A DNA stretch of 64,000 nt from Macrostomum lignano (Eukaryota): NCBI GenBank assembly GCA_002269645.1, contig NIVC01002200.1:124001-188000 (forward strand), read 5' to 3'. The position numbers were made by a program, and so were the translations under genes. Positions 1 to 55,145 of this stretch are shown one piece after another (positions within the stretch are counted from its first letter, which is position 1; the number at the start of each line of letters is the position of its first letter). The notes below the pieces were generated by a model. That model had not been told where the DNA came from. It ran no database searches and saw only the letters and a list, made by a program, of their open reading frames with translations.

Positions 1-2450
1 GGGCGACTCTGGCCTGACGGGTGCAGGTTTGGAGTAAAGTTAGAGACGATTTCCAGTGTGGGTGAAGAGGGGATGCTCAGTGTGGGTGGAGGGGATTCTC
101 AGTGTGGGTGAAGAGGGGATGCTCAGTGTGGGTGAAGAGGGGATTCCCAGTGTGGGTGAAGAGGGGATGCTCAGTGTGGGTGAAGAGGGGACTCAGTGTG
201 GGTGAAGAGGAGATTCTCAGTGTGGGTGAAGAGGAGATTCTCAGTGTGGGTGAAGAGGAGATTCTCAGTGTGGGTGAAGAGGGGATGCTCAGTGTGGGTG
301 AAGAGGAGATTCTCAGTGTGGGTGAAGAGGGGATTCTCAGTGTGGGTGAAGAGGGGATTCTCAGTGTGGGTGAGAGGAGATTCTCAGTGTGGGTGAAGAG
401 GGGATTCTCAGTGTGGGTGAAGAGGAGATTCTCAGTGTGGGTGAAGAGGAGATTCTCAGTGTGGGTGAAGAGGGATTCTCAGTGTGGGTGAAGAGGAGAT
501 TCTCAGTGTGGGTGAAGAGGAGATTCTCAGTGTGGGTGAAGAGGAGATTCTCAGTGTGGGTGAAGAGGAGATTCTCAGTGTGGGTGAAGAGGGGATTCTC
601 AGTGTGGGTGAAGAGGGGACTCAGTGTGGGTGAAGAGGAGATTCTCAGTGTGGGTGAAGAGGGGATTCTCAGTGTGGGTGAAGAGGAGATTCTCAGTGTG
701 GGTGAAGAGGGGATCCCAGTGTGGGTGAAGAGGGGATTCTCAGTGTGGGTGAAGAGGAGATTCTCAGTGTGGGTGAAGAGGAGATTCTCAGTGTGGGTGA
801 AGAGGGGATTCTCAGTGTGGGTGAAGAGGGGATTCTCAGTGTGGGTGAAGAGGGGATGCTCAGTGTGGGTGAAGAGGGGATTCTCAGTGTGGGTGAAGAG
901 GAGATTCTCAGTGTGGGTGAAGAGGAGATTCTCAGTGTGGGTGAAGAGGGGATTCTCAGTGTGGGTGAAGAGGGGATTCTCAGTGTGGGTGAAGAGGAGA
1001 TTCTCAGTGTGGGTGAAGAGGGGATTCTCAGTGTGGGTGAAGAGGAGATTCTCAGTGTGGGTGAGAGGGGATTCTCAGTGTGGGTGAAGATGGGATTCTC
1101 AGTGTGGGTGAAGAGGAGATTCTCAGTGTGGGTGAAGAGGGGATTCTCAGTGTGGGTGAGAGGGGATTCTCAGTGTGGGTGAAGAGGGGATGCTCAGTGT
1201 GGGTGAAGAGGGGATCCTCAGTGTGGGTGAAGAGGGGATTCTCAGTGTGGGTGAAGAGGGGATTCTCAGTGTGGGTGAAGAGGAGATTCTCAGTGTGGGT
1301 GAAGAGGGGATTCTCAGTGTGGGTGAAGAGGGGATTCTCAGTGTGGGTGAAGAGGGGATGCTCAGTGTGGGTGAAGAGGGGATTCTCAGTGTGGGTGAAG
1401 AGGAGATTCTCAGTGTGGGTGAAGAGGAGATTCTCAGTGTGGGTGAAGAGGGGATTCTCAGTGTGGGTGAAGAGGGGATTCTCAGTGTGGGTGAAGAGGA
1501 GATTCTCAGTGTGGGTGAAGAGGGGATTCTCAGTGTGGGTGAAGAGGAGATTCTCAGTGTGGGTGAGAGGGGATTCTCAGTGTGGGTGAAGATGGGATTC
1601 TCAGTGTGGGTGAAGAGGAGATTCTCAGTGTGGGTGAAGAGGGGATTCTCAGTGTGGGTGAGAGGGGATTCTCAGTGTGGGTGAAGAGGGGATGCTCAGT
1701 GTGGGTGAAGAGGGGATCCTCAGTGTGGGTGAAGAGGGGATTCTCAGTGTGGGTGAAGAGGGGATTCTCAGTGTGGGTGAAGAGGAGATTCTCAGTGTGG
1801 GTGAAGAGGGGATTCTCAGTGTGGGTGAAGAGGGGATTCTCAGTGTGGGTGAGAGGAGATTCTCAGTGTGGGTGAAGAGGGGATTCTCAGTGTGGGTGAA
1901 GAGGAGATTCTCAGTGTGGGTGAAGAGGAGATTCTCAGTGTGGGTGAAGAGGGGATTCTCAGTGTGGGTGAAGAGGAGATTCTCAGTGTGGGTGAAGAGG
2001 AGATTCTCAGTGTGGGTGAAGAGGAGATTCTCAGTGTGGGTGAAGAGGAGATTCTCAGTGTGGGTGAAGAGGAGATTCTCAGTGTGGGTGAAGAGGGGAC
2101 TCAGTGTGGGTGAAGAGGAGATTCTCAGTGTGGGTGAAGAGGAGATTCTCAGTGTGGGTGAAGAGGAGATTCTCAGTGTGGGTGAAGAGGGGATTCTCAG
2201 TGTGGGTGAAGAGGGGATGCTCAGTGTGGGTGAAGAGGGGATCCTCAGTGTGGGTGAAGAGGGGATTCTCAGTGTGGGTGAAGATGGGATTCTCAGTGTG
2301 GGTGAAGAGGAGATTCTCAGTGTGGGTGAAGAGGGGACTCAGTGTGGGTGAAGAGGGGATTCTCAGTGTGGGTGAAGAGGGGACTCAGTGTGGGTGAAGA
2401 GGAGATTCTCAGTGTGGGTGAAGTGCTGATAAGAGAGGGAAATTTACCAT
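1..2450 (-). CDS. 5' end of an unknown gene: ATG-only first coding exon (2450-2448), intron 2447-14, next exon starting at 13 (M-ARVA...) and running off the window
   Basis: On the minus strand, ATG|GTAAAT at 2450-2442 is a donor. CTAAC branch-like motif, pyrimidine-rich stretch and CCGTCAG|GCC at 20-11 form an acceptor. Only about 5 codons are visible, so no product can be assigned. Confidence 0.5.
55..2424. repeat. 24-bp minisatellite (CTCAGTGTGGGTGAAGAGG(G/A)GATT), about 100 units, intronic
   Basis: Direct tandem periodicity of 24 nt, with 22-23 nt variants. Source of all the GEEEILSV/WVKRRFSV ORFs. Confidence 0.97.
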
Positions 2451-2523
2451 GGATAATGACTAATCTCAAATATCTGAGTTTTAGCGAAGGCAAATATTAG
2501 AACGAAAAGTCGAAATAGATACT

Positions 2524-2562
2524 TTTATTGCAATTGAAAGAAACAATTTATTTTCATTTATT
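2524..2562 (-). terminator. Cluster of three AATAAA polyadenylation signals for XPA
   Basis: TTTATT on the + strand at 2524-2529, 2547-2552 and 2557-2562, 145-180 nt downstream of the XPA stop. Confidence 0.7.
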
Positions 2563-2706
2563 TTTACACAAGAAAGTCTTACAAATTTGATAAATTTAGT
2601 ACCTTGTTTTTTTCTTAATTCAAGCCCCTAAGCTACTGTCAGTAGCTAGTCAGAGATTATACAGTAAAATAATTGAATCGAAAGCAAAAAATGCAGTTAT
2701 TTTCAG

Positions 2707-4181
2707 TCACATTTTGCAGAAAGTCTGCTGGTAGCCGCAGTCCAGACAAGTGCGGCAGAACTCGTCCTCGGCGGCCCCGTCAACACCGGCGGAGGCCGCA
2801 GGGACCTCGTCGCCGAACCGGTGCTCGTGTCGGTACTGCCGCTTCGGCGCCAGACTGGACCGAACGTGCAGCCGCAACTCGCTCATTCGCTTATCGAATT
2901 GGCGCTTCTTGGCGCGGTCGCGGGCGCCGGCGCGCTTCTCGTGCTCAGCGTTGAGCGCCTCCTCGGAGCCCCAGACTTCTAGGGCTCGTTGGGCCACCTG
3001 GACAATGATGGGGAATGCAGATGCTGGGTAGAGTATTCTAATGTGCTGGATTATCTCCATTTGCAGAAGTACTTGGACGCTTATCTTTGTCCTTTATCTA
3101 GAAACAGGATTATCTAGCTACTGGTGGACGTGGATTATCTATTTACTGGTAGATTATCTAGCTACTGGTGGTTTATCTAGCTACAGATGGATTATCTAGC
3201 TACTGGTGGATTATCTAGCTACAGATGGATTATCTAGCTACTGGTGGATTATCTAGCTACTGAGGGATTATCTAGCTACTGATGGATTATCTAGCTGCTA
3301 GTGGATTATCTAGCTACTGATGGATTATCTAGCTGCTAGTGGATTATCTAGCTACTGATGGATTATCTAGCTACTGATGGATTATCTAGCTACTGATGGA
3401 TTATCTAGCTACTGATGGATTATCTAGCTACTGATGGATTATCTAGCTACTGATGGATTATCTAGCTACTGATGGATTATCTAGCTGCTAGTGGATTATC
3501 TAGCTACTGATGGATTATCTAGCTACTGATGGATTATCTAGAGAGAATTTTACTTATCTAGATTATTTAACTAACACGACAGGCCACTAACTAACCTAAC
3601 CCGGCACCTACCTGAGCCTCCAAATACAGGCGCATATCGCCACCCCTGGGATTGTGCGGGTTCCGCCTGAGCAGGCAGCGCAACGGCGGCTCTCGCCTGT
3701 CCAAATCGCCGTCCTTCAACAGGTAGCGCGACTTGGCGTCGCTGCGAGCCAACAGGCCGTACGCATCCTCACGCTGCGTCTCGTAGCAGGCGTCGCACAC
3801 GGCAACGTCAAATCTGTCGTAGAGAAACGACGAATTAAACGGCCTGTCGCAGTCGGCGCACACCAGCTCGTTCGGGTCGATCAGCGGTCCGGGTTCGACA
3901 ACGAGACGACGAGGCTTCTGCTGGTTTCCTCGCTTGCCGCCGCCGCTGCCGTCCTCCTCGTAGATGAAGCCGCCGCAAGAGTCAGTCGCCGCGGCACCGA
4001 CACCGCCGAAACCGACGGCGACGGCTACTGGCGCGGCGTTGGAGGCTGCGCCTGTGGAGGCGGATGGGGCGGCAGCGGATTTGTCCTGCAGGTCGCGCAG
4101 GCGCTGCTTCGACTGGCGCAGCAGGAGGGCAGCCTGGCGGTTGCGCTCGCTGCGGGCCAGCTGCTCTTGGGTTAGCGGCAT
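2707..4181 (-). CDS. XPA: DNA repair protein XPA; exons 4181-3612 and 2997-2707
   Basis: C4 zinc finger CADC...VCDAC, YLLKDGDLDRREPPLR, KNPH-like RNPHNPRGGDMRLYL, RALEVWGSEEAL, C-terminal CxxCG..TFCKM, all matching XPA. Phase-0 GT..AG intron (CAG|GTAGGT ... TGTCCAG|GTG). Confidence 0.95.
3105..3541. repeat. 19-bp minisatellite (TGGATTATCTAGCTACTGA) inside the XPA intron
   Basis: Tandem periodicity of 19 nt, degenerate at the edges. Confidence 0.95.
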
Positions 4182-4249
4182 GCATGAAGTGGAGATTTGC
4201 CCATTTTGTATCTACTACTAATAGTAGTTTGTGTATTTCTCTTCTGTAT

Positions 4250-5625
4250 CATCTACTTGCTGGATTATCTATCTTTGTACCATCTACCTGCTGGATTATC
4301 TACCTTTGTACCATCTACCTGCTGGATTATCTACCTTTGTACCATCTACCTGCTGGATTATCTACCTTTGTACCATCTACCTGCTGGATTATCTACCTTT
4401 GTACCATCTACCTGCTGGATTATCTACCTTTGTACCATCTACCTGCTGGATTATCTACCTTTGTACCATCTACCTGCTGGATTATCTACCTTTGTACCAT
4501 CTACCTGCTGGATTATCTAACTTTGTACCATCTACCTGCTAGATTATCTACCTGTTGGATTATCTACCTGCTGGATTATCTACCTGCTGGATTATGTACC
4601 TGCTAGATTATCTACCTTCTGGATTATCTACCTGATGGATTATCTACTTGCTGGATTATCTACCTGCTGGATTATCTATCTGCTGGATTATCTACCTGCT
4701 GGATTATCTACCAGCTGGATTATCTACCTGCTGGATTATCTACCTGCTAGATTATCTACCTGCTGGATTATCTACCTGCTGGATTATCTAACTGATGGAT
4801 TATCTACCTGATGGATTATCTACTTGCTGGATTATCTACCTGCTGGATTATCTATCTGCTGGATTATCTACCTGCTGGATTATCTACCTGCTAGATTATC
4901 TATCTGCTGGATTATCTACCTGCTGGATTATCTACCAGCTGGATTATCTATCTGCTGGATTATCTATCTGCTAGATTATCTATCTGCTGGATTATCTACC
5001 TGCTGGATTATCTATCAGCTGGATTATCTATCTGCTAGATTATCTACCTGCTAGATTATCTATCTGCTGGATTATCTATCTGCTGGATTATCTACCTGCT
5101 GGATTATCTATCTGCTGGATTATCTACCAGCTGGATTATCTACCTGCTGGATTATCTACCTGCTAGATTATCTACCTGCTGGATTATCTACCTGCTGGAT
5201 TATCTACCTGCTGGATTATCTAACTGATGGATTATCTACCTGATGGATTATCTACTTGCTGGATTATCTACCTGCTGGATTATCTACCTGCTGGATTATC
5301 TACCTGCTGGATTATCTACCTGCTGGATTATCTATCTGCTGGATTATCTACCTGCTGGATTATCTACCTGCTAGATTATCTACCTGTTGGATTATCTACC
5401 TGCTGGATTATCTACCTGCTAGATTATCTACCTGCTGGATTATCTACCTGCTGGATTATCTACCTGCTGGATTATCTACCTTTGTACCATTTACCTGCTG
5501 GATTATTTACCTACTGAATTATCTACCTACTGAATTATCTATTTACTGAATTATCTACCTACTGAATTATCTATTTACTGAATTATCTACCTACTGAATT
5601 ATCTACCTATTGAGATTATCTACCT
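4250..5625. repeat. Compound minisatellite upstream of XPA: 31-bp units, then 16-bp TGGATTATCTACCTGC, then 16-bp TGAATTATCTACCTAC
   Basis: Direct tandem periodicity; the unit type changes along the array. Confidence 0.95.
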
Positions 5626-6341
5626 ATTGGGTATCACTCAAGTTCTGATAACCAACAGATGCAATGATTATGCAATGGAATAATCGCCTCTCTAAACTGA
5701 ATACTACAGAGGTATACATGGACCAATGAGTTAAACTGAAGCTTAGGTTAGCATATAGCAAGGTATTGAAGTTGCACTTTAATTAAAGTTAATCCACGTG
5801 ATCCGAGATAGATGAGTAAACGGAAAACGGTCATAGATAACGCGCCCTGTTTACACACTTTACTCGCTCGCTCCCCACTTGAGCAAACACACTGGCTGAG
5901 CAAACTTGTGCAGATAAGGCTACAAAAGCACAACATAGTACACTAGTACAGTGTCTATTGACAAGGCTAAGGATTCTATAGCTAGTTTAATAAACCCCAC
6001 AATCCAGATTATATCTATGAAAGTCTCTGGTCTTTGGCAGGGTCAAATTTGGTTAAGAACAGGCACACAAGTGCTACAAGCGTACACGCTGGTATCAAGA
6101 GAAATTCTACCGCTGTCAACCACCCCACACACGAATGAGGATGTTAGACAATAAATTTAATTAAGTATCTAAAAGTGGTAGCCAGTTCTAACTTGTACTG
6201 TCTAACTATACTTGCCTTTAACTTATTAATTTTATAAGAAGCACAATAATAATAAGCCAATTCCAACAACTATGGTGACTACCACAAGGTAACTACATAG
6301 AAAGTCTAAAATGTTCCAAAACAGTCTCAAATGTGCCTAGC

Positions 6342-7659: not shown

Positions 7660-8830
7660 TATCTAGCTAGCTAACTAATTAGCTATCCAGGAAACTAATC
7701 AGCTATCCAGGTAACTAATCAGCTATCCAGGTAACTAATCAGCTATCCAGGTAACTAATCAGCTATCCAGGTAACTAATCACCTATCCAGGTAACTAATC
7801 AGCTGCTATCCAGGTAACTAATTAGCTATCCAGGAAACTAATCAGCTATCCAGGTAACTAATCAGCTATCCAGGTAACTAATCAGCTATCCAGGTAACTA
7901 ATCAGCTGCTATCCAGGTAACTAATTAGCTATCCAGGAAACTAATCAGCTATCCAGGTAACTAATTAGCTATCCAGGTAACTAATCAGCTATCCAGGTAA
8001 CTAATCAGCTATCCAGGTAACTAATTAGCTATCCAGGTAACTAATCAGCTATCCAGGTAACTAATCAGCTATCCAGGTGACTAATCAGCTATCCAGGTAA
8101 CTAATTAGCTATCCAGGTAACTAATCAGCTATCCAGGTAACTAATCAGCTATCCAGGTAACTAATCAGCTATCCAGGTAACTAATCAGCTATCCAGGTGA
8201 CTAATCAGCTATCCAGGTAACTAATCAGCTATCCAGGTAACTAATTAGCTATCCAGGTAACTAATCAGCTATCCAGGTGACTAATCAGCTATCCAGGTAA
8301 CTAATCAGCTGCTATCCAGGTAACTAATTAGCTATCCAGGAAACTAATCAGCTATCCAGGTAACTAATTAGCTATCCAGGTAACTAATCAGCTATCCAGG
8401 TAACTAATTAGCTATCCAGGTAACTAATCAGCTATCCAGGTAACTAATTAGCTATCCAGGTAACTAATCAGCTATCCAGGTAACTAATCAGCTATCCAGG
8501 TAACTAATCAGCTATCCAGGTAACTAATCAGCTATCCAGGTAACTAATCAGCTATCCAGGTAACTAATCAGCTATCCAGGTAACTAATCAGCTATCCAGG
8601 TAACTAATCAGCTATCCAGGTAACTAATCAGCTATCCAGGTAACTAATCAGCTATCCAGGAAACTAATCAGCTATCCAGGTAACTAATCAGCTATCCAGG
8701 TAACTAATCAGCTATCCAGGTAACTAATTAGCTATCCAGGTAACTAATTAGCTATCCAGGTAACTAATCAGCCTCCCAGGTAACTAATGAGCCCTCCAGA
8801 TAACTAATTAGACATCTAGGGAACTAATCA
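7660..8830. repeat. 20-bp minisatellite (TAACTAATCAGCTATCCAGG)
   Basis: Tandem periodicity of 20 nt with occasional 23-nt units. Begins about 45 nt after the stop codon of the 8876-12183 gene. Confidence 0.96.
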
Positions 8831-8875
8831 GCAATGTCACTACAATCAAACTTACTCCAATCCATGTCAGTATTC

Positions 8876-11800
8876 CTAAGCCCCAACTGAGCGATCAAAG
8901 TGTCGCAAATAGCGCAGCAAATTCTGCATAGTAACAAGGTCGGCCTTACCAAAGCTGAAGCCGAACCTAAACAGGATGTCAAGCAAGCTGCGTCTGCCGG
9001 GAAAGCGGAACGAGTCGATGTCGGGCCGCTGGAACAGGCCCGGCTGAAGGCTGTTCCCGAGCTCCAGCAGCCCGTCAAAGATGAGGTCGCAGTCGCGGTA
9101 CACGAAGAACAGCGGCCTGCGGGTGCCCAAGCAGTGCTGCAGCAGGGACCTGGCGTGGCTGCCTTCACGGCGCAGCTCCTCGAACAGCGGCTCGTCCAGC
9201 ACAAATAGGAAAATGGTTTGATGAAGCTGCTGCTCCAGTAGCTGCTGCGGGCCGATATTTACTGGCTTCGAATCCAAGTGCCTTAACCTTACTGGGATTT
9301 TATCCCTATCCGTATTCCCAATACACTTTCCATTATCCACATTCTCAGAATCACCTGTCATCATCAGTATTCCGATGAAAATTCCCAATACTGATTCCCA
9401 GCATCCCCAATCCCGATTCCCAGCATCCCCAATCCCGGTTCCCAGCATCCCCAATCCTGATTCCCAGCATCCCCAATCCCGATTCCCAGCATCCCCAATC
9501 CCGATTCCCAGCATCCCCGATCTCGATTCCCAGCATCACCAATCCCGATTCCCAGCATCCCCAATCCCGATTCCCAGCATCCCCAATCCGGATTCCCAGC
9601 ATCTCCAATCCCGATTTCCATCATCACTAATGACGATTCCCAGCAGCATATTTCTTCAAACGAGTAAGTATAAGCTGCAGACAAAGCCGGAACCTGTTTA
9701 ATGCCAATAGCAGCATTGCAAAGCCCTCACCTGCGTAACACCGTCAGCGTAAGCACTTGGCCCAGGCGAACATTTCCAGTCGGTCTCAAAGCAGACATCG
9801 TAGGGAATGAGCTCCACGCTGGCGGGCTCCGCACAGGCAATGAATTTGCCCAACTGCGGGTCCAAGTCCCCCAAACTGACGGCTCCGCTAGCGCAGATGC
9901 GCACAGCGGCGCGGCGAAGCGTCAGACCAGCCGGCTGCGCTGCGCTGCCCCGGCCTGCCAGCCGGCCAGCCAAGCTGTGCAGCAGCCGGCGTAGCGGACT
10001 CAGCGGCGACCTGCGATATGGGGGCTCTTCTTCGAGCAGCTCGAACAGAATGACGGCCGCCAGTTCCAGACGATTTCTGTCGATCAATCCGACAAGAAAG
10101 CTGCGAACTTGGTTGCCAGCCTGCCTGCTGATGTGCTGCACCAGCTGGTCCTGACATATGACATGGTTATTACAAGTTATTAGCAGGGGAGCGGTGAACT
10201 TGTAAGTAGCTTGAACGCAGTGCCGCACTCTCTCACAGCAGTGCAGCACTCTCACACAGCAGTGCAGCACTCTCTCACAGCAGTGCAGCACTCTCACACA
10301 GCAGCAGTGCAGCACTCTCTCACAGCAGTGCAGCACTCTCTCACAGCAGTGCAGCACTCTCTCACAGCAGCAGTGCAGCACTTTATCACAGCAGTGCAGC
10401 ACTCTCACAGCAGCAGTGCAGCACTCTCACACAGCAGCAGTGCAGCACTCTCTCACAGCAGTGCAGCACTTTATAACAGCAGCAGTGCAGCACTCTCTCA
10501 CAGCAGCAGTGCAGCACTCTCTCACAGCAGTGCAGCACTCTCTCACAGCAGCAGTGCAGCACTCTCTCACAGCAGTGCAGCACTCTCTCACAGCAGTGCA
10601 GCACTCTCTCACAGCAGCAGTGCAGCACTTTATCACAGCAGTGCAGCACTCTCACAGCAGCAGTGCAGCACTCTCACACAGCAGCAGTGCAGCACTCTCT
10701 CACAGCAGTGCAGCACTTTATAACAGCAGCAGTGCAGCACTCTCTCACAGCAGCAGTGCAGCACTCTCTCACAGCAGTGCAGCACTCTCTCACAGCAGTG
10801 CAGCACTTTATCACAGCAGTGCAGCACTTGATCGCAGCAGCAGTGCAGCAATCTCTCACAGCAGTGCAGCACTCTCTCACAGCAGCAGTGCAGCACTCTC
10901 TCACAGCAGTGCAGCACTCTCTCACAGCAGTGCAGCACTTTATAACAGCAGCAGTGCAGCACTCTCTCACAGCAGCAGTGCAGCACTCTCTCACAGCAGT
11001 GCAGCACTCTCTCACAGCAGCAGTGCAGCACTCTCTCACAGCAGTGCAGCAATATCTCACAGCAGTGCAGCAATCTCTCACAGCAGTGCAGCACTCTCTC
11101 ACAGCAGTGCAGCAATCTCTCACAGCAGTGCAGCACTTTATCGCAGCAGCAGTGCAGCACTCTCACACAGCAGCAGTGCAGCACTTTATCGCAGCAGCAG
11201 TGCAGCACTCTCACACAGCAGCAGTGCAGCACTCTCTCACAGCAGCAGTGCAGCACTCTCTCACAGCAGCAGTGCAGCACTCTCACACAGCAGTGCAGCA
11301 CTTTATCGCAGCAGCAGTGCAGCACTCTCACACAGCAGCAGTGCAGCACTCTCACACAGCAGCAGTGCAGCACTCTCTCACAGCAGCAGTGCAGCACTCT
11401 CTCACAGCAGCAGTGCAGCACTCTCTCACAGCAGTGCAGCACTTTATAACAGCAGCAGTGCAGCACTCTCTCACACAGCAGCATATCACACATGACACCA
11501 TAGCACATCATAGCACTCACCACGCTCATGCCCATTATGGTCTGAAAGTCCAGGTTCTGAACCAAGCCAATGTTGACTACAAAATCGTGACCCAACACCG
11601 GGTTCTGAAGCCGAGCCAGGTACAACTTGAATAGAGATTCTCCTCTGCTACTGATGTCGCCCAGAGGAGACTGCAGTCGCCGTGCCAGCTGCACAGACTT
11701 GGCCTCTGCCAGGTGTACAAGACCGGCAAGAGACCCAGACCCGAAGCTGCGCAGGTGGTCGCAGCGCCGCAGGAAGTCAGCAAACCGAATCAGCTTGCTT

Positions 11801-12183
11801 GAACGATCTGCAAGATTCTCCTCCCAGAGGTGCAGCAGTTTCAGCAGGCAGCACCGCAGCTCTGCAAAGTCCTCTGGCTGCAGCTGGTACAGCTGCTGAA
11901 CTGTCACCAGCTGGTCCATCAGTTTAACTAACAGCACTTCGCCTCTAAGGCTCATCGCTTCATTGGATGTCAGGTTAACAAGACGGAGTATGTCTCTAGT
12001 GGATTCACTGTGGACAATGCTGTGCAGCGCACTCAGTAGGTCAGTCAGAATCAGCTTTGATGCTTCTGGTAAGTAGCCAAATAAGGCGAGTGGCAGTGAG
12101 CCATGCCTGTCTAAGACCTCATCATCTCTATTGTTGTTGAGTGGCTGCTCCATGTCTGACATTGCAGCAATGTAGAATGCCAT
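8876..12183 (-). CDS. Uncharacterised ~483-aa protein, possible death-fold + TIR-like architecture, copy 1; exons 12183-11521, 10150-9731, 9244-8876
   Basis: Three GC-rich open segments joined by phase-0 GT..AG introns (GTG|GTGAGT, TGTCAG|GAC, CAG|GTGAGG, CCGCAG|CAG), conserved in a second copy. The gene model is fairly solid. The domain call rests only on motif resemblance (LLHLWEENLADRSSKLIRFADFLRRC; YDVCF...TIFLFVLD...RPLFFVY). Confidence 0.65.
9385..9650. repeat. 22-bp minisatellite (CCCAATCCCGATTCCCAGCATC) in intron 2 of copy 1
   Basis: About 11 tandem units of 22 nt. Confidence 0.93.
10215..11482. repeat. 21/24-bp CAG-rich minisatellite (CAGCAGTGCAGCACTCTCTCA) in intron 1 of copy 1
   Basis: Tandem units. 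Produces the AVQHSLT/VLHCCER ORFs. Confidence 0.95.
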
Positions 12184-12234
12184 TCAAGTTGGTACATAAT
12201 TGAGTTTTGTCTAAAGCAGATTGGGGTTTACTGT

Positions 12235-13130
12235 TTACATAATTCCTGTCCTGTCCGATCTCCACCTAAGGCATGACTGTATTAAAATAAATTCCTGTCC
12301 AATCCCCACCTAAGGCGTGACCATATTAAAATAAATTCCTGTCCAATCCCCACCTAAGGCGTGACCATATTAAAATAAACTCCTGTCCAATCCCCACCTA
12401 AAGTGGGACTGCATTTACCTAATTCCTGTCCGATATCTACCTAAAGTGGGACTGTATTTACCTAATTCCTGTCCGATATCTACCTAAAGTGGGACTGTAT
12501 TTACCTAATTCCTGTCCGATATCTACCTAAAGTGGGACTGTATTTACCTAATTCCTGTCCGATATCTACCTAAAGTGGGACTGTATTTACCTAATTCCTG
12601 TCCGATATCTACCTAAAGTGGGACTGTATTTACCTAATTCCTGTCCGATATCTACCTAAAGTGGGACTGTATTTACCTAATTCCTGTCCGATATCTACCT
12701 AAAGTGGGACTGCATTTACCTAATTCCTGTCCGATATCTACCTAAAGTGGGACTGTATTTACCTAATTCCTGTCCGATATCTACCTAAAGTGGGACTGTA
12801 TTTACCTAATTCCTGTCCGATATCTACCTAAAGTGGGACTGTATTTACCTAATTCCTGTCCGATATCTACCTAAAGTGGGACTGTATTTACCTAATTCCT
12901 GTCCGATATCTACCTAAAGTGGGACTGTATTTACCTAATTCCTGTCCGATATCTACCTAAAGTGGGACTGTATTTACCTAATTCCTGTCCGATATCTACC
13001 TAAAGTGGGACTGTATTTACCTAATTCCTGTCCGATATCTACCTAAAGTGGGACTGTATTTACCTAATTCCTGTCCGATATCTACCTAAAGTGGGACTGT
13101 ATTTACCTCATTCCTGTCCGACCATAACCT
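12235..13130. repeat. 44-bp units followed by a homogeneous 43-bp array (TATTTACCTAATTCCTGTCCGATATCTACCTAAAGTGGGACTG)
   Basis: Period 44 at about 12235-12410, then period 43 for about 16 near-identical units. Confidence 0.95.
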
Positions 13131-13624
13131 AAAGTCAACGTTGACGTTCAACTATATGCTTGTAATCAAAAACCACGTGGACAATATTTAACACACTATG
13201 CAGATATCTAAATGAAATAAATCAAGCCAAACAGAATTTACCTGCAAAAATGTAAAAAATCGTTGGAAAATTAGCAACCAAAAAACTGTATACTGCGTTT
13301 GCGCAGCGACTATTCAGCAGCGAATTGCGAAGTAAACGTGTACAAAAGCCTGTCACAAGTATATGTACATGGGTGAATACAATTCAGTTAAATCTAGACA
13401 TACGAATATACGCTAACAAGGTCTCATACCATTATAAATACTTTATATACAAAATCTAAAAACAATTGAAAACAAAATCAACTAATTTAAGCTGCAAGGT
13501 AATAAGTACCAAAGTTTTTTAAGTCTCCGAACCAATTCGGACTATGAGCAAGGCATAAAAGGTGCTTACGAGTACAATATAGAAAGAATTCGCCTATGTT
13601 GAGGCAACAGATAAAGGCTAGATC

Positions 13625-15002
13625 ATCGGTGATAGGGAGCGGATAAGGAACAGATATTGATACAGGGAGCGGATACTGATGCAGGGAGCGGATACTGATG
13701 CAGGGAGCGGATACTGATGCAGGGAGCGGATACTGATACAGGGAGCGGATACTGATACAGGGAGCGGATACTGATACAGGGAGCGGATATTGAGGTAAGG
13801 AACGGATACTGATGCAGGGAGCGGATACTGATACAGGGAGCGGATACTGATACAGGGAGCGGATATTGAGGTAAGGAACGGATACTGATGCAGGGAGCGG
13901 ATACTGATGCAGGGAGCGGATACTGATGCAGGGAGCGGATACTGATACAGGGAGCGGATACTGATACAGGGAGCGGATGTACTGATACAGGGAGCGGATA
14001 TTGAGGTAAGGAACGGATACTGATGCAGGGGGCGGATACTGATGCAGGGAGCGGATAATGATGCAGGGAGCGGATACTGATACAGGGAGCGGATAATGAT
14101 GCAGGGAGCGGATACTGATGCAGGGAGCGGATAATGATGCAAGGAGCGGATACTGATACAGGGAGCGGATATTGAGGTAAGGAACGGATACTGATGCAGG
14201 GGGCGGATACTGATGCAGGGAGTGGATACTGATACAGGGAGCGGATACTGATACAGGGAGCGGATATTGAGGTAAGGAACGGATACTGATGCAGGGAGCG
14301 GATACTGATACAGGGAGCGGATACTGATACAGGGAGCGGATGTACTGATACAGGGAGCGGATACTGATACAGGGAGCGGATATTGAGGTAAGGAACGGAT
14401 ACTGATGCAGGGAGCGGATACTGATACAGGGAGCAGATACTGATACAGGGAGCGGATACTGATACAGGGAGCGGATGTACTGATACAGGGAGCGGATACT
14501 GATACAGGGAGCGGATATTGAGGTAAGGAACGGATACTGATGCAGGGAGCGGATACTGATACAGGGAGCGGATACTGATACAGGGAGCGGATACTGATAC
14601 AGGGAGCGGATACTGATACAGGGAGCGGATGTACTGATACAGGGAGCGGATACTGATACAGGGAGCGGATATTGAGGTAAGGAACGGATACTGATGCAGG
14701 GAGCGGATACTGATGCAGGGAGCGGATACTGATACAGGGAGCAGATACTGATACAGGGAGCGGATACTGATACAGGGAGCGGATGTACTGATACAGGGAG
14801 CGGATACTGATACAGGGAGCGGATATTGAGGTAAGGAACGGATACTGATGCAGGGAGCGGATACTGATACAGGGAGCGGATGTTGAGGTAAGGAACGGAT
14901 ACTGATACAGGGAGCGGATACTGATGCAGGGAGCGGATACTGATGCAGGGAGCGGATACTGATGCAGGGAGCGGATACTGATGCAGGGAGCGGATACTGA
15001 GG
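13625..15002. repeat. 19-bp minisatellite (GATACTGATACAGGGAGCG) with GATATTGAGGTAAGGAACG variant units
   Basis: Tandem periodicity of 19 nt. Lies between the two paralogues. Confidence 0.96.
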
Positions 15003-15609
15003 TGTTAGCATCTGATATTATTAATTCGGGCATAATTAACCTATAACACCCTGAATGCCTTCGAACTGGAAACCAAGCAAAAAATTCAGCATTATTGACA
15101 CCAAGAACCGGATACTAGCACTAATTCCTATTAGAAAAGACAACTTGTCTATCCGTGAAAACAAACTCTAGAATACAATAAACGGGAAGACAGAAAAAAG
15201 CACTCAGACTTAGTTTCGATGATCAATAATGCAATAAAATATGAATCAATAAAGAACTAGATGACTGGATAGATTAGACACTTAAGTTATTGCATAATCT
15301 TGGAATATGAAAAGGCGCCCAGTATATGTGATACTGCACAGAGCGATCAACGAGAGAATATATTGCACACAGAAAAACTGGTTAAAAATTTCATTGCAGC
15401 ACCAAATTTCTTTATTTGATTAAAGACAGAAAGAAGCTCTAGAAATAGAAAAGGCCGTGGCCCAAAAATACTGATTCTATAAACTACATTGTTCTCCACG
15501 TGGGGTCATTCTTGCAACTGGAACTTGTTCTCCAGATGTTCTCCATTGCTGCTGAGTGGGAGGATTGTTCTCCAGATGTGAACTTGCCGTCTCAAGACTG
15601 GAACTTGTC

Positions 15610-15850
15610 TAATGTCATCAGGGTCACATATCATCCTTGCCTCATGTCATCAGGGCCACATATCATCCTTGCCTCATGTCATCTGGGCCACATATCATCC
15701 CTACCTCATGTCATCTGGGCCACATATCATCCCTACCTCATGTCATCTGGGCCACATATCATCCCTACCTCATGTCATCTGGGCCACATATCATCCCTAC
15801 CTCATGTCATCTGGGCCACATATCATCCCTACCTCATGTCATCCGGGTCA
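15610..15850. repeat. 32-bp minisatellite (CATATCATCCCTACCTCATGTCATCTGGGCCA), about 7 units
   Basis: Tandem periodicity of 32 nt. Confidence 0.92.
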
Positions 15851-15990
15851 CAGGTACTCAAGGTCACATATCCTCTAATTTGCCTCGTGTCACCCGGGCC
15901 ACATGCCACTCTCCCAGCAAAGCATCTGCCAACGCCATCACAGCCAATCAATCGAAGTTGCCCAAAAAGCAACCAATTCTAAAGTTGCTT

Positions 15991-18375
15991 TTATTCCATC
16001 GCAGCGTCTAAACGACTTAAACAGCTTATCAGATTCTGCATGGTAACAATTTCGGCTCTCCGACGCATCGCCAATTCGTTGCGACGGCCAGCTGGCCAGC
16101 CGATGAGGAGCGGGCAAAACCGGGAACATCCAACTGTTGACGTGGTTTCAGACAGGCAAACCGTCTGTCCAGGAAAGCGGAACGAGTCGATGTCGGGCCG
16201 CTTGAACAGGCCCGGCTGAAGGCTGTTCCCGAGCTCCAGCAGCCCGTCAAAGATGAGGTCGCAGTCGCGGTACACGAAGAACAGCGGCCGGCGGGTGCCC
16301 AAGCAGTGCTGCAGCAGGGACCTGGCGTGGCTGCCTTCACGGCGCAGCTCCTCGAACAGCGGCTCGTCCAGCACAAATAGGAAAATGGTTTGATGAAGCT
16401 GCTGCTCCAGTAGCTGCTGCGGGCCGATATTTACTGGATACGAATCCAAGTGCCTTAACCTTACTGGGATTTGATCCCTAGCCGTACTCTTACAATATCC
16501 ATTCCATAATCCACATTCCCAGAATCAATCCCCAATCTCAATTCCAAAATCATGAATCCAGACTTCTTCTGCAATCCCTGTTTAAAGAATCCCCATTTCC
16601 AATTCCAAACATCCCCAATCCAAATGTCCAGCAGGTCTCACCGACATCACCCAATCAGAGTAGCAAAATCCATCATCTGCAGCGAAGGTCCAGTCAGTCT
16701 CAAAGCAGACATCGTAGGGAATGAGCTCCACGCTGGCGGGCTCCGCACAGGCAATGCATTTGCCAAACTGCGGGTCCAAGTCCGCCAAACTGACGGCTCC
16801 GCTAGCGCAGATGCGCACAGCGGCGCGGCGAAGCGTCAGGCCAGCCGGCTGCGCTGGCGGCGGCGCGAAGTTCGACGGATTTGCATCTTCGAGCAGCTCG
16901 AACAGAATGACGGCCGCCAGTTCCAGACGATTTCTGTCGATCAATCCGACAAGAAAGCCGCGAACTTGGTTGCCAGCCTGCCTGCTGATGTGCTGCACCA
17001 GCTGGTCCTGACATGTGACATGGTTATTACAAGTTATTAGCAGGGGAGCGGTGAACTTGTAAGTAGCTTGAACGCAGTGCCGCACTCTCTCACAGCAGTG
17101 CAGCACTCTCACACAGCAGCAGTGCAGCACTCTCTCACAGCAGTGCAGCACTTTATAACAGCAGCAGTGCAGCACTTTATAACAGCAGCAGTGCAGCACA
17201 CTCTCACAGCAGCAGTGCAGCACTTTATCACAGCAGTGCAGCACTTGATCGCAGCAGCAGTGCAGCAATCTCTCACAGCAGTGCAGCAATCTCTCACAGC
17301 AGTGCAGCACTTTATCACAGCAGCAGTGCAGCACTCTCTCACAGCAGTGCAGCACTTTATCACAGCAGCAGTGCAGCACTCTCTCACAGCAGTGCAGCAC
17401 CCTCTCTCACAGCAGCAGTGCAGCACTCTCTCACAGCAGCAGTGCAGCACTCTCTCACAGCAGTGCAGCACTCTCTCACAGCAGCAGTGCAGCACTCTCT
17501 CACAGCAGCAGTGCAGCACTTTATAACAGCAGCAGTGCAGCACTCTCTCACAGCAGCAGTGCAGCACTCTCTCACAGCAGTGCAGCACTTTATAACAGCA
17601 GCAGTGCAGCACTCTCTCACAGCAGCAGTGCAGCACTCGCACACAGCAGCAGTGCAGCACTCGCACACAGCAGCATATCACACATGACACCATAGCACAT
17701 CATAGCACTCACCACGCTCATGCCCATTATGGTCTGAAAGTCCAGGTTCTGAACCAAGCCAATATTGACTACAAAATCGTGACCCAACACCGGGTTCTGA
17801 AGCCGAGCCAGGTACAACTTGAATAGAGATTCTCCTCTGCTACTGATGTCGCCCAGAGGAGACTGCAGTCGCCGTGCCAGCTGCACAGACTTGGCCTCTG
17901 CCAGGTGTACAAGACCGGCAAGAGACCCAGACCCGAAGCTGCGCAGGTGGTCGCAGCGCCGCAGGAAGTCAGCAAACCGAATCAGCTTGCTTGAACGATC
18001 TGCAAGATTCTCCTCCCAGAGGTGCAGCAGTTTCAGCAGGCAGCACCGCAGCTCTGCAAAGTCCTCTGGCTGCAGCTGGTACAGCTGCTGAACTGTCACC
18101 AGCTGGTCCATCAGTTTAACTAACAGCACTTCGCCTCTAAGGCTCATCGCTTCATTGGATGTCAGGTTAACAAGACGGAGTATGTCTCTAGTGGATTCAC
18201 TGTGGACAATGCTGTGCAGCGCACTCAGTAGGTCAGTCAGAATCAGCTTTGATGCTTCTGGTAAGTAGCCAAATAAGGCGAGTGGCAGTGAGCCATGCCT
18301 GTCTAAGACCTCATCATCTCTATTGTTGTTGAGTGGCTGCTCCATGTCTGACATTGCATCAATGTAGAATGCCAT
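15991..18375 (-). CDS. Uncharacterised ~484-aa protein, possible death-fold + TIR-like architecture, copy 2; exons 18375-17713, 17007-16642, 16416-15991
   Basis: Paralogue of 8876-12183 with the same intron phases. Exon 1 is nearly identical; the ends of exons 2 and 3 are divergent but open. Confidence 0.65.
17075..17672. repeat. 21/24-bp CAG-rich minisatellite in intron 1 of copy 2
   Basis: Same unit as 10215-11482, about half the length. Confidence 0.95.
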
Positions 18376-34864: not shown

Positions 34865-36947
34865 TTACAGCCACCATTCCTGACCACGGACAGCCGGCAG
34901 GCCGCCCTCGGCGTGCTGCAACGCCACGTCGGGATCGTCGGTGAGGTCGGCGGCTTTAGCCTCGTTAGTCCAGTAGTCGCCGCGCTCGAATGTGTAGTTG
35001 CGGAAGAAGCAGATCACTCCAATCAGCAATAGGAGAGCCAGGGCGCCAACCACGGCTAGGATTATTATTATCTGGTTCTGCCGCTCGATGTCCTCGGGTC
35101 GGGCGAATTCCAAATTCGGCGGAATAGTCGGATACGGCCTGCGGACAGTCGGTTAAGAGTGCAGGCTATGAGGGTAGAAATCTGACTGTGATAGTAGAGA
35201 TCCGACTGTGATAGTAGAGATCCGACTGTGATAGTAGAGATCTGACTGTGATAGTAGAGATCCGACTGTGATAGTAGAGATCTGACTGTGATAGTAGAGA
35301 TCTGACTGTGAGGGTAGAGATCTGACTGTGATAGTAGAGATCTGACTGTGATAGTAGAGATCTGACTGTGATAGTAGAGATCTGACTGTGATAGTAGAGA
35401 TCCGACTGTGATAGTAGAGATCTGACTGTGATAGTAGAGATCCGACTGTGATAGTAGAGATCTGACTGTGATAGTAGAGATCTGACTGTGATAGTAGAGA
35501 TCCGACTGTGATAGTAGAGGAGATCCGACTGTGATAGTAGAGATCCGACTGTAATAGTAGAGATCTGACTGTGATAGTAGAGATCCGACTGTGATAGTAG
35601 AGATCTGACTGTGATAGTAGAGATCTGACTGTGAGGGTAGAGATCCGACTGTGATAGTAGAGATCTGACTGTGATAGTAGAGATCTGACTGTGATAGTAG
35701 AGATCCGACTGTGATAGTAGAGATCTGACTGTGATAGTAGAGATCCGACTGTGATAGTAGAGATCTGACTGTGATAGTAGAGATCTGACTGTGATAGTAG
35801 AGATCTGACTGTGATAGTAGAGATCTGACTGTGATAGTAGAGATCTGACTGTGATAGTAGAGATCTGACTGTGATAGTAGAGATCTGACTGTGATAGTAG
35901 AGATCTGACTGTGATAGTAGAGATCCGACTGTGATAGTAGAGATCTGACTGTGATAGTAGAGATCCGACTGTGATAGTAGAGGAGATCCGACTGTGATAG
36001 TAGAGATCCGACTGTAATAGTAGAGATCTGACTGTGATAGTAGAGATCCGACTGTGATAGTAGAGATCTGACTGTGATAGTAGAGATCTGACTGTGATAG
36101 TAGAGATCTGACTGTAAGGGAGAGATCTGACTGTAAGGGAGAGATCTGACTGTGGGGGTAGAGATCTGACTCTGTAAGGGAGAGATCTGACTGTGAGGGT
36201 AGAGAGACCTCACTCTGTGAGGGTAAAGATCTCACTATGCGAGGGTAAAGATCTCACTCTCTGACTGTAGAGATCTGACTTTAAGAATAGAGATCTCACT
36301 ATGGGAACAGAGATGATTATGAGAATAACAGATCTCACTATGGGGATAGAGAACAGAAGTCAATCAAAGAGAAAAATTATAAGAATAAATACTTCGAAGT
36401 ATCAAATAACTTTTCAACTTTGGAGACCTATGGGAATACATATGGGAAGACTTATTGGAATACTTTTAGACGAAAACCTAGATCAAGAACAGAGATCAGA
36501 AACTATCATGATACCAGGTTACGAAAAAACTCACCGAATCTCGGCCGGGTCGTCAATCGGCAGGACCTCTTCGATACCGCAGTAGTTCTCCGTAATGCCC
36601 GACGACTTAAATACCCGGCTATTGTTGGGCTCCTGGAAGGCGGCTTTCAATGGGAAGAAATTATTAAACTGCACGTTGTAGATGCAGCCCTCGAATCCAA
36701 CAGGCATGCTGGAGTTGCGCCCGATGTAGATCACGGCCGGATTGTCCAGCCGGGTGTCCGACGTGGCGCTCAATATGTTGGAGAAGTCCCTGAACTGCAC
36801 CGGATAGTCGTCCACTTTGATGTTCACCTGCGCGTGGCGCCAGAGGCGGTTTCATCTATGTACCCATCTATCTATCTGTCTTGGTGTCCGTCTGTCCATC
36901 CATCTATCTTAGTGTCCGTTCGTCTGTCTGTCTGTCTGTCTGTATCG

Positions 36948-37104: not shown

Positions 37105-40100
37105 CTCATAAATCCAAATCCTGCAGTACACAATGAAATAAACTAAAAGCGGCAAGCAAACAAACCTGCCGCCCAGCCTTGGTCCTGTACACAACCACAG
37201 TGTGATGCTGATCGTTAGTCAAGTCCACGTCCAAACTGCTAGTAGTAACTTCGTACCACTGGAAGCCAAGGTTGATTTCAACAGTGATACCGCCGGCATT
37301 GTTAATTCGAACAATTAACGACTCGGACGGGCCGCCCAGCCTATTATTGGCCGGAATGTCCTCGTTGCGGATCTGCATCAGTATGCCAACTTTAGCTCTG
37401 GTCTTGAAGCCAACCTGAATGTACTCGTCAATAGTATTGATGCCTTTAGCGCGTTCAGGCTGGGATATGTCTATCTTGATAATATCGGCGCTGGATTTGA
37501 ACGTAGCACCGACTGTGCGGCCGCAGATGTAGCCTCTGTAAGGCGTCATGCCGCACTCGCAATAATAATGCGAATAATATTCCATGCATTCGGCCCGGTT
37601 TAGGCAGGGATTCTCTTCGCAGCGAGGCTGGCAGCCCGCCAACAAGCCGTAGGTGACCTCCTTGCGTTCAACCTTGCCGCGCAGGTCCTGCACTACTCCG
37701 TTGATCATCAGGTTGGACAGGCAGCCTAGGTAGCCTTCGTTGTAGTTCTGCGTTGCGCCAACGTACAACTTACCGTCAAACTGCAGGAATTGGAAGGCCT
37801 GATCGGCTGGCTCGCGATCGCGGCGGATCTCGTCCTGCGGGATGGGATTTGGGATTTGGGAATATTCTTACGGGTTGGATTTGGGAAGATTCTTACAGGT
37901 TGGATTTGGGAAGATTCTTACAGGTTGGATTTGGGAAGATTCTTACAGGTTGGATTTGGGAAGATTCTTACAGGTTGGATTTGGACAGATTCTTACAGGT
38001 GGGATTTGAACAGATTCTTACAAATGGGATTTGGGAAGATTTTTAAAGGTTGGATTTGGGGAGACTCTAAAAGGTGGGTGTTTGGGAAGATTCTTACAGA
38101 CAGGATTTGGGAATTCTTATAGGTTGGATTTGGGAAGATTCTTACAAATGGGATTTCGAAATATTCTTACAGGTTGGATTTGGGAATATTCTTACAGGTT
38201 GGATTTGGGAAGATTCTTACAGGTTGGATTTGGGAAGATTCTTAAAGGTGGGTATTTGGGAAGATTCTTACAGGTTGGATTTGGGAAGATTCTTAAAGGT
38301 GGGTATTTGGGAAGATTCTTACAGGTTGGATTTGGGAAGATTCTTGCAGGTGGCATTTGGGGAGATTCTTAAAGGTGAGTATTTGGGAAGATTCTTACAG
38401 ACAGGATTTGGGAATTCCTGTCTGTTTTCGAGATTTTTATCGGCGGTATTTGGGAAAACTGTTACACGTGGGATTTGCAAAGATTTTAAGGATTTCCCAT
38501 GTATCCCACTAATACTTACCTGGTCAACTCGCAGAGTGAACTCTTTCCTATTTCGCTCAAACTGTACAATATGCCATTCGTTGTCATTATAAATCACAGT
38601 GACCTGACTCTCGCCGGGACTGTTACTGAAGGCCACTGAGCTGATTGACAGAACGCCAAAGCCAGCATTAAATGAAAATTGAATCTCTCTGCCGCGTTTC
38701 AACCTGGCCTCTAAAAAGTGCTGAGTCTTATTGCCGGTGATCTGAAAGAACACCGCGTCAGTCTGAGTAGTCTTGAACAAGAATCGGATATCAAGCTCAG
38801 TCTCGGAATAGACCCGCTCCAGTTCAATGGTGGCGTCAGTTTTTCTATAAGTGACAGCATTGTCAAACAGCGTATCTCCGGTGCACTCCAGAGGCCCCAG
38901 AGTGAACTGGCCCTCTTTCAAGTCGGCAGTGCTGCCCGTGTCGCCAAATCTCAGCTGAGTAACCGGCAGGTCCTCCTTGTAGGTAAAGTAGCCGGTGTCC
39001 TGCTGATAATCAGACGCGTCGGCCACCTCGTTGAAACTGTCGCAGTTGCACTCGGCGCCGCGCTGACAGGTGCCGGTGACGCCGCAGGCGCATCGCTGAA
39101 TACCCGGGGCGGAGCCGCCCCAATAGTAGCGAGGCTGGCCCCGTCTGGACACCCACCAGGACCAGGCCCGATTGAACAGAGAGGTCTGGCCCAGAGTTGG
39201 CCGGCTGAGCAGGCGGGCGTTCCGGCATCGATAATTGATCATCTGGCGGCAGGAGACGCTGCGCCGGACCAGCTCGGCTAGCGCTGTGGTGGACGTCTTA
39301 TAGTCGACGTTGTAAATGAAGCTTCCGGGTAGTTGAAATCCATCGACCTAAATTTGATAGCAACGCGTGTAATATTATTTTACTTTTGATGAGTCTAACA
39401 TTTTGCAAAGACAGGAGTTGACGTCTTCATTTCCCCGTACACAGTCGCACAGGAGTGCGTAGCGGCACTCACTTTTTATCGTTAGGCATGTGCACTTTAC
39501 TGTGCCTTGGGGGTTGGCCTTTAGGAGCGTTAATTGCACGGGCAGACCCAAGCCGAGATACCAATTTAGCCTCAAATTAATATGACTGCATTTGGAATCG
39601 AGCCTGGGCCGCTGGCACAAAAGGAGGCGCTAAACCACTAGGCTACGTAGGCTACGGACCCCCTACGGTACAGCATCAAAATAGGTCTTTATAGTTGACC
39701 TTCAAGAGCCGCTATCAGAGCAAAAAACTTATATAGTCATACGTTTAAGATACATAGATCAACGTTTGAATTTGTACGCACCAGAGTGTCAGCCTTGGCA
39801 GTGTGGTTAACAATAGTGCGGACGACATTGTCGCGGAAAACGCAGCTAACTTTGATTGGATCCAATATCTGCGAGCCATCAATGTCTATAGTGATGTTTT
39901 TCTCGCTAATTGTTGGATATAACAGTTGCATCTCGGAGCAAGAGGTGAAGAATGTTGATTCGTGACAGACGGCGCTATCTCTGTAGCCTTCCGGACAATC
40001 GCAGAAGAATTCGTCCCAGTTTTGGCTGCAATTGGCGCCACGCTTGCACGGGTTGGGCATACAGTTGTCCCGCATAGCGCACGTACGATTGAAAATTGTG

Positions 40101-52456: not shown

Positions 52457-52489
52457 GTGAGCATAACGATGAGTGTCTATCCTGTTCAG

Positions 52490-54005
52490 TGAGCTCTGCT
52501 GCCTACCCAACTCATGTCAGTCAGTGAGCTCCGCTGCCTACCCAACTCATATCAGTCAGTGAGCTCCGCTGCCTACCCAACTCTGATCAGTCAGTGAGCT
52601 CCGCTGCCTACCCAACTCATATCAGTCAGTGAGCTCCGCTGCCTACCCAACTCTGATCAGTCAGTGAGCTCTGCTGCCTACCCAACTCATGTCAGTCAGT
52701 GAGCTCCGCTGCCTACCCAACTCATGTCAGTGAGCTCCGCTGCCTACCCAACTCATGTCAGTCAGTGAGCTCCGCTGCCTACCCAACTCAGTCAGTGAGC
52801 TCCGCTGCCTACCCAACTCATGTCAGTGAGCTCCGCTGCCTACCCAACTCATGTCAGTCAGTGAGCTCCGCTGCCTACCCAACTCATGGCAGTCAGTAAG
52901 CTCCGCTGCCTACCCAACTCAGTCAGTGAGCTCCGCTGCCTACCCAACTCATGTCAGTCAGTGAGCTCCGCTGCCTACCCAACTCAGTCAGTCAGTGGGC
53001 TCCGCTGCCTACCCAACTCAGTCAGTGAGCTCCGCTGCCTACCCAACTCATATCAGTCAGTGAGCTCCGCTGCCTACCCAACTCATGGCAGTCAGTAAGC
53101 TCCGCTGCCTACCCAACTCTGATCAGTCAGTGAGCTCTGCTGCCTACCCAACTCATGTCAGTCAGTGAGCTCCGCTGCCTACCCAACTCATATCAGTCAG
53201 TGAGCTCCGCTGCCTACCCAACTCATATCAGTCAGTGAGCTCCGCTGCCTACCCAACTCATGTCAGTCAGTGAGCTCCGCTGCCTACCCAACTCATGTCA
53301 GTGAGCTCCGCTGCCTACCCAACTCATGTCAGTCAGTGAGCTCCGCTGCCTACCCAACTCAGTCAGTGAGCTCCGCTGCCTACCCAACTCATGTCAGTGA
53401 GCTCCGCTGCCTACCCAACTCATGTCAGTCAGTGAGCTCCGCTGCCTACCCAACTCATGGCAGTCAGTAAGCTCCGCTGCCTACCCAACTCAGTCAGTGA
53501 GCTCCGCTGCCTACCCAACTCATGTCAGTCAGTGAGCTCCGCTGCCTACCCAACTCAGTCAGTCAGTGGGCTCCGCTGCCTACCCAACTCAGTCAGTGAG
53601 CTCCGCTGCCTACCCAACTCATGTCAGTCAGTGAGCTCCGCTGCCTACCCAACTCATGGCAGTCAGTAAGCTCCGCTGCCTACCCAACTCAGTCAGTGAG
53701 CTCCGCTGCCTACCCAACTCATGTCAGTGAGCTCCGCTGCCTACCCAACTCATGTCAGTCAGTGAGCTCCGCTGCCTACCCAACTCATGGCAGTCAGTAA
53801 GCTCCGCTGCCTACCCAACTCAGTCAGTGAGCTCCGCTGCCTACCCAACTCATGTCAGTCAGTGAGCTCCGCTGCCTACCCAACTCAGTCAGTCAGTGGG
53901 CTCCGCTGCCTACCCAACTCAGTCAGTGAGCTCCGCTGCCTACCCAACTCAGTCAGTCAGTGGGCTCCGCTGCCTACCCAACTCAGTTAGTGAGCTCCGC
54001 TATCT
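52490..54005. repeat. 31/35-bp minisatellite (GTCAGTCAGTGAGCTCCGCTGCCTACCCAACTCAT) in Pur-alpha intron 2
   Basis: Tandem units with variable (GTCA)n copy number. Confidence 0.96.
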
Positions 54006-55135: not shown

Positions 55136-55145
55136 GCAATATCCA

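Follow-up and report, generated by a model that had tools for sequence, protein, structure and literature searches.

How two neighbouring genes of the flatworm Macrostomum lignano come to be transcribed, and where the second of them obtains its start codon, is the question raised by a 64,000-nucleotide (nt) stretch of contig NIVC01002200.1 (forward-strand positions 124,001 to 188,000), which we refer to as the window. Its minus strand carries an XPA gene followed head-to-tail by an ENPP-like gene that runs out across the edge of the window. An earlier note, made from the letters of the window, had proposed that the two genes are co-transcribed, and that a spliced leader (SL) is trans-spliced directly behind the XPA poly(A) signals, at an acceptor ending at position 2474, to a short exon holding the ATG of the downstream gene. 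Co-transcription is a reasonable reading, yet it is already contained in the public annotation, so that both the phenomenon and the pair are known. The downstream gene most likely receives its SL, and with it a start codon, about 2.4 kilobases (kb) further downstream than the proposed 2474 site, judging from the reading frame and the existing gene models. The window locus is represented by the sequence L002 (assembly Mlig_3_7, GCA_002269645.1, NIVC01002200.1), which is 100% identical to the reverse complement of window positions 1-6000; a window position p is equivalent to 14164 - p in L002 coordinates and 124000 + p in contig coordinates. The assembly contains two paralogous copies of the locus, referred to as L001 and L003.

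The gene that follows XPA is predicted from its translation to encode an ENPP-type phosphodiesterase. The earlier note had left it to be named from the adjacent sequence, and the naming became possible just past the window edge, where the translation matches the Phosphodiest family (PF01663, 2.1e-65) with residues 35-371 aligned to profile positions 1-341 of 342, a full-length domain. Only the first 13 nt of exon 1 of this gene, BOX15_Mlig015453g2 (protein PAA60048), fall within the window (GCCAGAGTCGCCC, positions 1-13, minus strand, placed by identity to L002 and by translation), the remainder lying at L002 14164-16115. The open reading frame (ORF) consists of two exons, L002 14151-14648 and 15066-16115, and gives a protein of 515 residues plus an initiator Met, whose N-terminus carries a hydrophobic, signal-like segment and whose C-terminal part contains a hydrophobic helix at about residues 470-490. 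The closest named relatives are trematode proteins called 'ENPP5', at 43-45% identity. Among the three ENPP-like copies (L002 14154-16115, L001 13894-15487 and L003 18159-19766) only the window copy is modelled intact, with 514 amino acids; the L001 model stops at 270 amino acids, and the L003 model frameshifts after ...YLYADP and stops at 396. Either of two explanations, decaying duplicates or assembly errors, may apply to the L001 and L003 models.

Immediately in front of this ORF lies a 3' splice site (window 43-14, minus strand) made up of a CTAAC branch-like motif at 43-39, a pyrimidine-rich tract and cccgtCAG, with the CAG at 16-14. In the frame of the ENPP-like protein there is a TGA 66 nt upstream of this distal acceptor and no ATG between the two, and the first in-frame ATG of the coding sequence is codon 190. 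With no genomic ATG in frame, the Met must come from spliced-on sequence. The M. lignano SL is CGGTCTCTTACTGCGAAGACTCAATTTATTGCATG, 35 nt in length, and its 3' end is ATG (Ustyantsev & Berezikov 2021, PMC8629364); the 3'-terminal AUG of flatworm SLs is documented as an initiator (Cheng et al. 2006, as cited in PMC12582326). Joined to the exon at position 13, the SL gives MARVALLL..., with 516 codons in frame. Joined at position 2473 it would place the SL AUG 26 nt (frame +2) before the genomic ATG, opening a 21-codon out-of-frame upstream ORF (uORF), MIFEISHYPWPESPFCSSRPC, that overlaps that ATG.

The existing gene models point to the same place. Five models of the downstream gene are available, PAA60044, PAA60048 and PAA92717 from GenBank, where they are called 'partial', and A0A1I8GMT0 and A0A1I8G8X4 from UniProt, which come from a different assembly and pipeline. 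None of them has a Met, and they begin with ARVALLL or RVALLL, either at the distal acceptor (14/13) or 3 nt later. The proposed mini-exon (2473-2448) and the 2474 acceptor are found in none of the five. Since an ORF is called as 5'-partial, the 5' end of the transcript must lie at the acceptor, and had the mini-exon been part of the transcript, the TGA and TAG that precede its ATG in frame would have compelled the call of a complete ORF starting with Met. The SL acceptor at 2474 with its ATG mini-exon thus goes unused in every available model, besides opening the uORF, and that part of the earlier proposal was not borne out; the distal CAG at 16-14 is instead the most likely trans-splice acceptor of the downstream gene, as far as frame and models can tell.

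The motifs from which the earlier proposal was built are nevertheless all present on the minus strand. Behind the XPA stop, TGA 2709-2707, come three AATAAA hexamers (2562-2557, 2552-2547 and 2529-2524), which are conserved in all three paralogous copies and are likely to be the poly(A) signals of XPA, with cleavage expected at about 2510-2500. They are followed by a T-rich stretch with CTAAT (about 2510-2481), a proximal candidate acceptor actCAG (CAG 2476-2474, AG 2475-2474) that is plausible by sequence, and a candidate 26-nt mini-exon, ATATTTGAGATTAGTCATTATCCATG (2473-2448), composed of 23 nt (2473-2451) and the ATG 2450-2448. The ATG runs directly into a donor-like GTAAAT (2447-2442), which departs at +5 from the GT[G/A]AG donor consensus of the species (PMC8629364). 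AATAAA in an AT-rich 3' untranslated region and a CAG are unremarkable against chance expectation; the less trivial ATGGT[AG]A occurs 7 times in the 128 kb of both window strands. Most likely the 2474 CAG and the ATG|GTAAAT at 2450-2442 are chance motifs of the intercistronic spacer, or a minor route at most.

Between these motifs and the distal acceptor the spacer is almost entirely repetitive. Of the 2,434-nt 'intron' (2447-14) that the proposal implied, 2,370 nt are a 24-nt minisatellite (window 54-2423, 99.6 copies by Tandem Repeats Finder, TRF), which takes up the bulk of the sequence separating XPA from the ENPP-like gene. Its unit, read on the minus strand, is cccctcttcacccacactgAG, a pyrimidine tract followed by ...cactgAG, so that about 100 consecutive pyrimidine-tract-plus-AG sites, all of them potential decoy acceptors, lie between XPA and the ENPP exon. 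The number of units is 100 in the window copy, 39 in L001 and 102 in L003; the spacers of L002 and L003 are identical and those of L001 and L002 are about 97% identical. The XPA stop and the distal acceptor are 2,693 nt apart, which falls to about 320 nt once the repeat is subtracted, and from the likely poly(A) site the repeat-adjusted distance is about 120 nt. Across the paralogues the physical spacer is 1.3-2.7 kb, with 2.7 kb in the window copy. Tandem repeats are known to inflate the operon spacers of M. lignano, where the repeat-adjusted mode is about 100 bp and a 1-kb threshold has been applied (Ustyantsev & Berezikov 2021, PMC8629364), and the XPA-ENPP pair falls below that threshold after the same adjustment. 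The two genes also have the same orientation (plus strand of L002: XPA 10001-11457, ENPP 14154-16115), with no gene called between them on either strand and only the minisatellite intervening. The statement that there is almost no room for an independent promoter is weakened by a spacer that is really about 2.5 kb long; what survives of it is that most of this length is minisatellite, the unique sequence open to a promoter amounting to about 75 nt before the repeat and about 55 nt after it.

The annotation itself treats the pair as one unit. The XPA gene of the window is BOX15_Mlig015453g1 (PAA60049) and the ENPP-like gene BOX15_Mlig015453g2, and the paralogous pairs are named in the same way, Mlig026438g1/g2 in L001 and Mlig004330g2/g3 in L003, each with a shared prefix and consecutive g numbers. 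Assembled transcriptional units of M. lignano are often multi-gene precursors, and the TBONE pipeline cut them into genes where SL-trimmed reads peak and where poly(A) tags lie (Wudarski et al. 2017, PMC5730564); the shared prefix and consecutive numbers therefore indicate that XPA and ENPP were cut from one transcriptional unit. Together with the published operon criteria, the g1 and g2 tags support the general proposal of co-transcription resolved by the SL, already public as it is. Neither Mlig015453, Mlig026438 nor Mlig004330 was found to be mentioned in the full texts and supplements of the papers, and the 90% clusters of the XPA and ENPP proteins hold GenBank and UniProt entries only. 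The older ML2 assembly holds a chimeric XPA-ENPP model, A0A1I8GAV0 (P0069), in which XPA exon 2 is fused to ENPP-like and further sequence. At the junction AAAAT|GTGACT is connected to CCAG|AGTC (about window position 2711 to L002 14156), which gives ...TFCK-I-VALLL. The model has the look of an artefact made by the gene predictor across a polycistronic region, chimeric gene models being the usual footprint of a polycistron (Calvelo et al. 2025).

Taken in sequence, the reading that we favour, and hold with moderate confidence, has a single precursor, with XPA polyadenylated behind the AATAAA hexamers and the AUG-bearing SL joined on at window 14/13, behind the minisatellite. XPA (g1) and the ENPP-type phosphodiesterase gene (g2) would be transcribed from the minus strand as one transcriptional unit, presumably from a single promoter, and the precursor RNA would be cleaved and polyadenylated past the AATAAA cluster at about 2510-2500. 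Transcription would run on through the 2.4-kb minisatellite, after which the 35-nt SL ending in AUG would be trans-spliced to the CAG at 16-14. The SL would supply both cap and initiator, AUG|GCC AGA GUC..., and the product, MARVALLLIAALLAQVSIACG..., would start with a signal peptide and have the phosphodiesterase domain behind it.

Several observations weigh against this reading. We infer SL addition at position 13 from the behaviour of the annotation, and of the three GenBank models two begin 3 nt past the acceptor (RVALLL) and not exactly at it. Scoring by sequence does not separate the proximal from the distal acceptor: both come to a pyrimidine fraction of 0.65, are free of AG for 38 nt upstream and have a branch-like motif, CTAAT or CTAAC. 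The ATG|GTAA stands in the right place and phase, and ATGGT[AG]A turns up in only about 3% of the shuffled versions of the 283-nt unique spacer. One would expect a usable donor ahead of an acceptor to promote cis-splicing. Flatworm SL acceptors are very often used in cis as well (Calvelo et al. 2025), so that some minor cis-splicing between the ATG|GT donor and the distal acceptor is conceivable. As for the single unit, the published pipeline accepted individual reads with as many as 1000 multi-mappings (Wudarski et al. 2017, PMC5730564), so the three paralogous copies do not count as independent evidence, and minisatellite coverage could have artificially merged two transcripts into one. The adjacency of XPA and ENPP was also not found in two other flatworm genomes, those of a monogenean and a liver fluke: in Cichlidogyrus, XPA is followed by a convergent GDI gene, and in Clonorchis, no XPA lies within the 8.7 kb upstream of ENPP5. 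Nothing there suggests an ancient or functionally meaningful pairing.

In one alternative there is no operon at all, and a separate promoter within the 2.5-kb spacer or just behind it would drive the ENPP-like gene, with an ordinary outron and SL addition at position 13, as for many monocistronic genes of M. lignano. The shared unit would then be an assembly artefact arising from read-through or from multi-mapped minisatellite reads, for which the permissive mapping provides an opening. About 60% of those M. lignano genes that undergo SL trans-splicing lie outside operons (Ustyantsev & Berezikov 2021, PMC8629364), the physical spacer is both long and variable in length among the paralogues, and XPA and ENPP are functionally unrelated and were not seen side by side in Cichlidogyrus or Clonorchis. 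We nevertheless judge it unlikely. The transcriptional-unit prefix is common to both genes, with consecutive numbers, in all three copies; the repeat-adjusted spacer of about 120-320 nt belongs to the operon mode and not to the non-operon mode of the published distribution (PMC8629364); the unique sequence on either side of the repeat leaves little for a promoter; and an independent chimeric XPA-ENPP model exists in the older assembly.

We give little credence to the mini-exon arrangement as proposed, with the SL joined at CAG 2476-2474, a 26-nt mini-exon ending in the ENPP start codon, and a 2,434-nt GT...AG intron (2447-14) removed in cis. In its favour, every signal that it needs (acceptor, ATG, GT donor, distal AG) is there in the right phase, and ATG|GCC yields the same MARVALLL protein; the scarcity of ATGGTRA in shuffled spacers and the equal quality of the two acceptors speak for it too. 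The proximal CAG is kept in L001, as aaaaCAG, despite indels nearby, two true introns of the locus, that of XPA and intron 1 of ENPP, do contain minisatellites, and a gap of 30 nt from poly(A) site to acceptor is short without being impossible. Against this stand the lack of the mini-exon or a Met in any database model from two assemblies and pipelines, the 'partial' calls where a transcript of this form would have yielded a complete Met-initiated ORF, and the donor's departure from the consensus at +5. The 21-codon uORF opened by the SL AUG would extend 37 nt beyond the genuine ATG and hamper translation, and cis-splicing would have to pass the roughly 100 decoy acceptors between donor and distal acceptor. 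Comparing the paralogues for constraint on the mini-exon was uninformative, their divergence of about 3% being too low.

A further reading makes use of both routes. The spacer's ...CCATG|GTAAAT would be an imitation, encoded in the genome, of how the SL exon ends (...GCATG|GTAAG), and the distal acceptor at 14/13 would be shared, receiving either the SL in trans or the mini-exon in cis, with the AUG in the same phase and the same protein produced. We see a parallel in a switch between CAG and CATG among the XPA paralogues 1.7 kb upstream, described below with the XPA gene, and consider this reading very doubtful all the same. If true, the spacer mimic and the XPA case would illustrate how easily start codons donated by the leader and start codons encoded in the genome could be exchanged in evolution. 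That ATG|GTAAAT is a decayed SL gene was dropped, as neither the SL 35-mer nor an 18-mer of SL end plus donor matched anywhere in the window with up to 3 mismatches.

The favoured reading, of one precursor with SL addition behind the minisatellite, places the pair among the published SL operons of M. lignano (PMC5730564, PMC8629364), with which it shares species and assembly, a single strand, g1/g2 tags, a downstream start at an AG and a repeat-adjusted spacer near the mode of about 100 bp, the tandem repeat inflating the physical spacer as has been published. Nothing substantive sets it apart, XPA-ENPP being one instance among about 10,000 operon-assigned genes; the only local peculiarity is the spacer ATG|GTAAAT, which looks like the 3' terminus of the SL exon plus its donor. 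It also resembles the flatworm SL AUG initiator (Cheng et al. 2006, as cited in PMC12582326), in that the ENPP ORF lacks an ATG in the genome, the base right behind the acceptor opens its signal peptide and the SL AUG reads in frame into all 516 codons, the difference being that for the ENPP-like gene use of the AUG is indicated by frame and annotation. With the SL2-type operons of C. elegans it has in common an upstream poly(A) signal, a short U-rich spacer once the repeat is subtracted, and a downstream trans-splice acceptor at about 100 nt. In contrast to C. elegans, M. lignano has a single SL that carries an AUG and no specialised SL2, and compared with the compact intercistronic regions of nematodes the physical spacer of 2.7 kb is long owing to the minisatellite.

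SL-resolved operons, minisatellite-inflated spacers and AUG-terminated leaders have all been published for M. lignano, and the pair bears one unit name in GenBank. The lesson of the locus is one of method: a downstream cistron in a flatworm may have no genomic start codon, and a scan for an acceptor followed by an ATG can be misled by a chance ATG|GT when the true acceptor may sit kilobases away behind a tandem repeat.

The XPA-family identity of the upstream gene is confirmed, in agreement with the earlier gene call. Both Pfam domains, XPA_N (PF01286, 7.8e-08) and XPA_C (PF05181, 1.9e-17), score above their cut-offs, and the protein is 99% identical to an M. lignano XPA entry and 37-49% identical to metazoan XPA orthologues. 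All parts lie on the minus strand. Coding exon 1 (3612-4181, from translation, the ORF list, Pfam and the GenBank model coordinates) opens with a genomic ATG at 4181-4179. The GTAGGT...CAG intron (2998-3611, from sequence and TRF) holds a 19-nt minisatellite at 3131-3541, and coding exon 2 (2707-2997), in frame from 2997, ends in ...CGYQQTFCKM*, which matches the C-terminus of P0022 exactly. In GenBank, model PAA60049 begins at 4163 (QLARS), right after an AG at 4165-4164, and is 5'-partial. XPA itself is thus annotated from just after an AG, and the pair would belong to the class in which both genes are trans-spliced.

The 5' end of XPA differs among the copies (window 4163-4190, minus strand; L003 about 13570-13582; L001 about 9990-10001). 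L003 reads cacTGCAG|CCGCTAACC, with a CAG acceptor where the SL AUG would yield MPLTQ, the window copy reads caTGCATG-CCGCTAACC and L001 reads cacTCATG-CCG. An extra T in the window copy and L001 turns the CAG acceptor into a genomic ATG at the identical position, leaving the N-terminus unchanged. The L003 XPA model, PAA92718 (400 amino acids), carries 114 additional, low-complexity-looking N-terminal residues from an upstream exon equivalent to about window 8950-9200. This suggests a further upstream gene or exon (g1 of Mlig004330) in the same transcriptional unit, in the region of about 8800-12200 on the minus strand of the window (L003 10001-13581), where a Pfam search of the minus-strand ORFs (8.8-12.2 kb) gave no match.

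Rfam gave no match over the whole window, which is rich in minisatellites, with about 15 arrays. Besides the spacer repeat and the array in the XPA intron (3131-3541), they lie at 4251-5625, 7672-8832, 9384-9645, 10217-11481, 12381-13121, 13653-15000, 17074-17675, 35166-36352, 37852-38414, 52486-53985, 54477-55138, 55566-56761 and 62090-63972. The window minisatellites have periods of 16-45 nt, and a 24/45-nt unit recurs at 10217-11481 and 17074-17675. Several of the arrays create long spurious ORFs in multiple frames, as for example at 9.3-11.6 kb.

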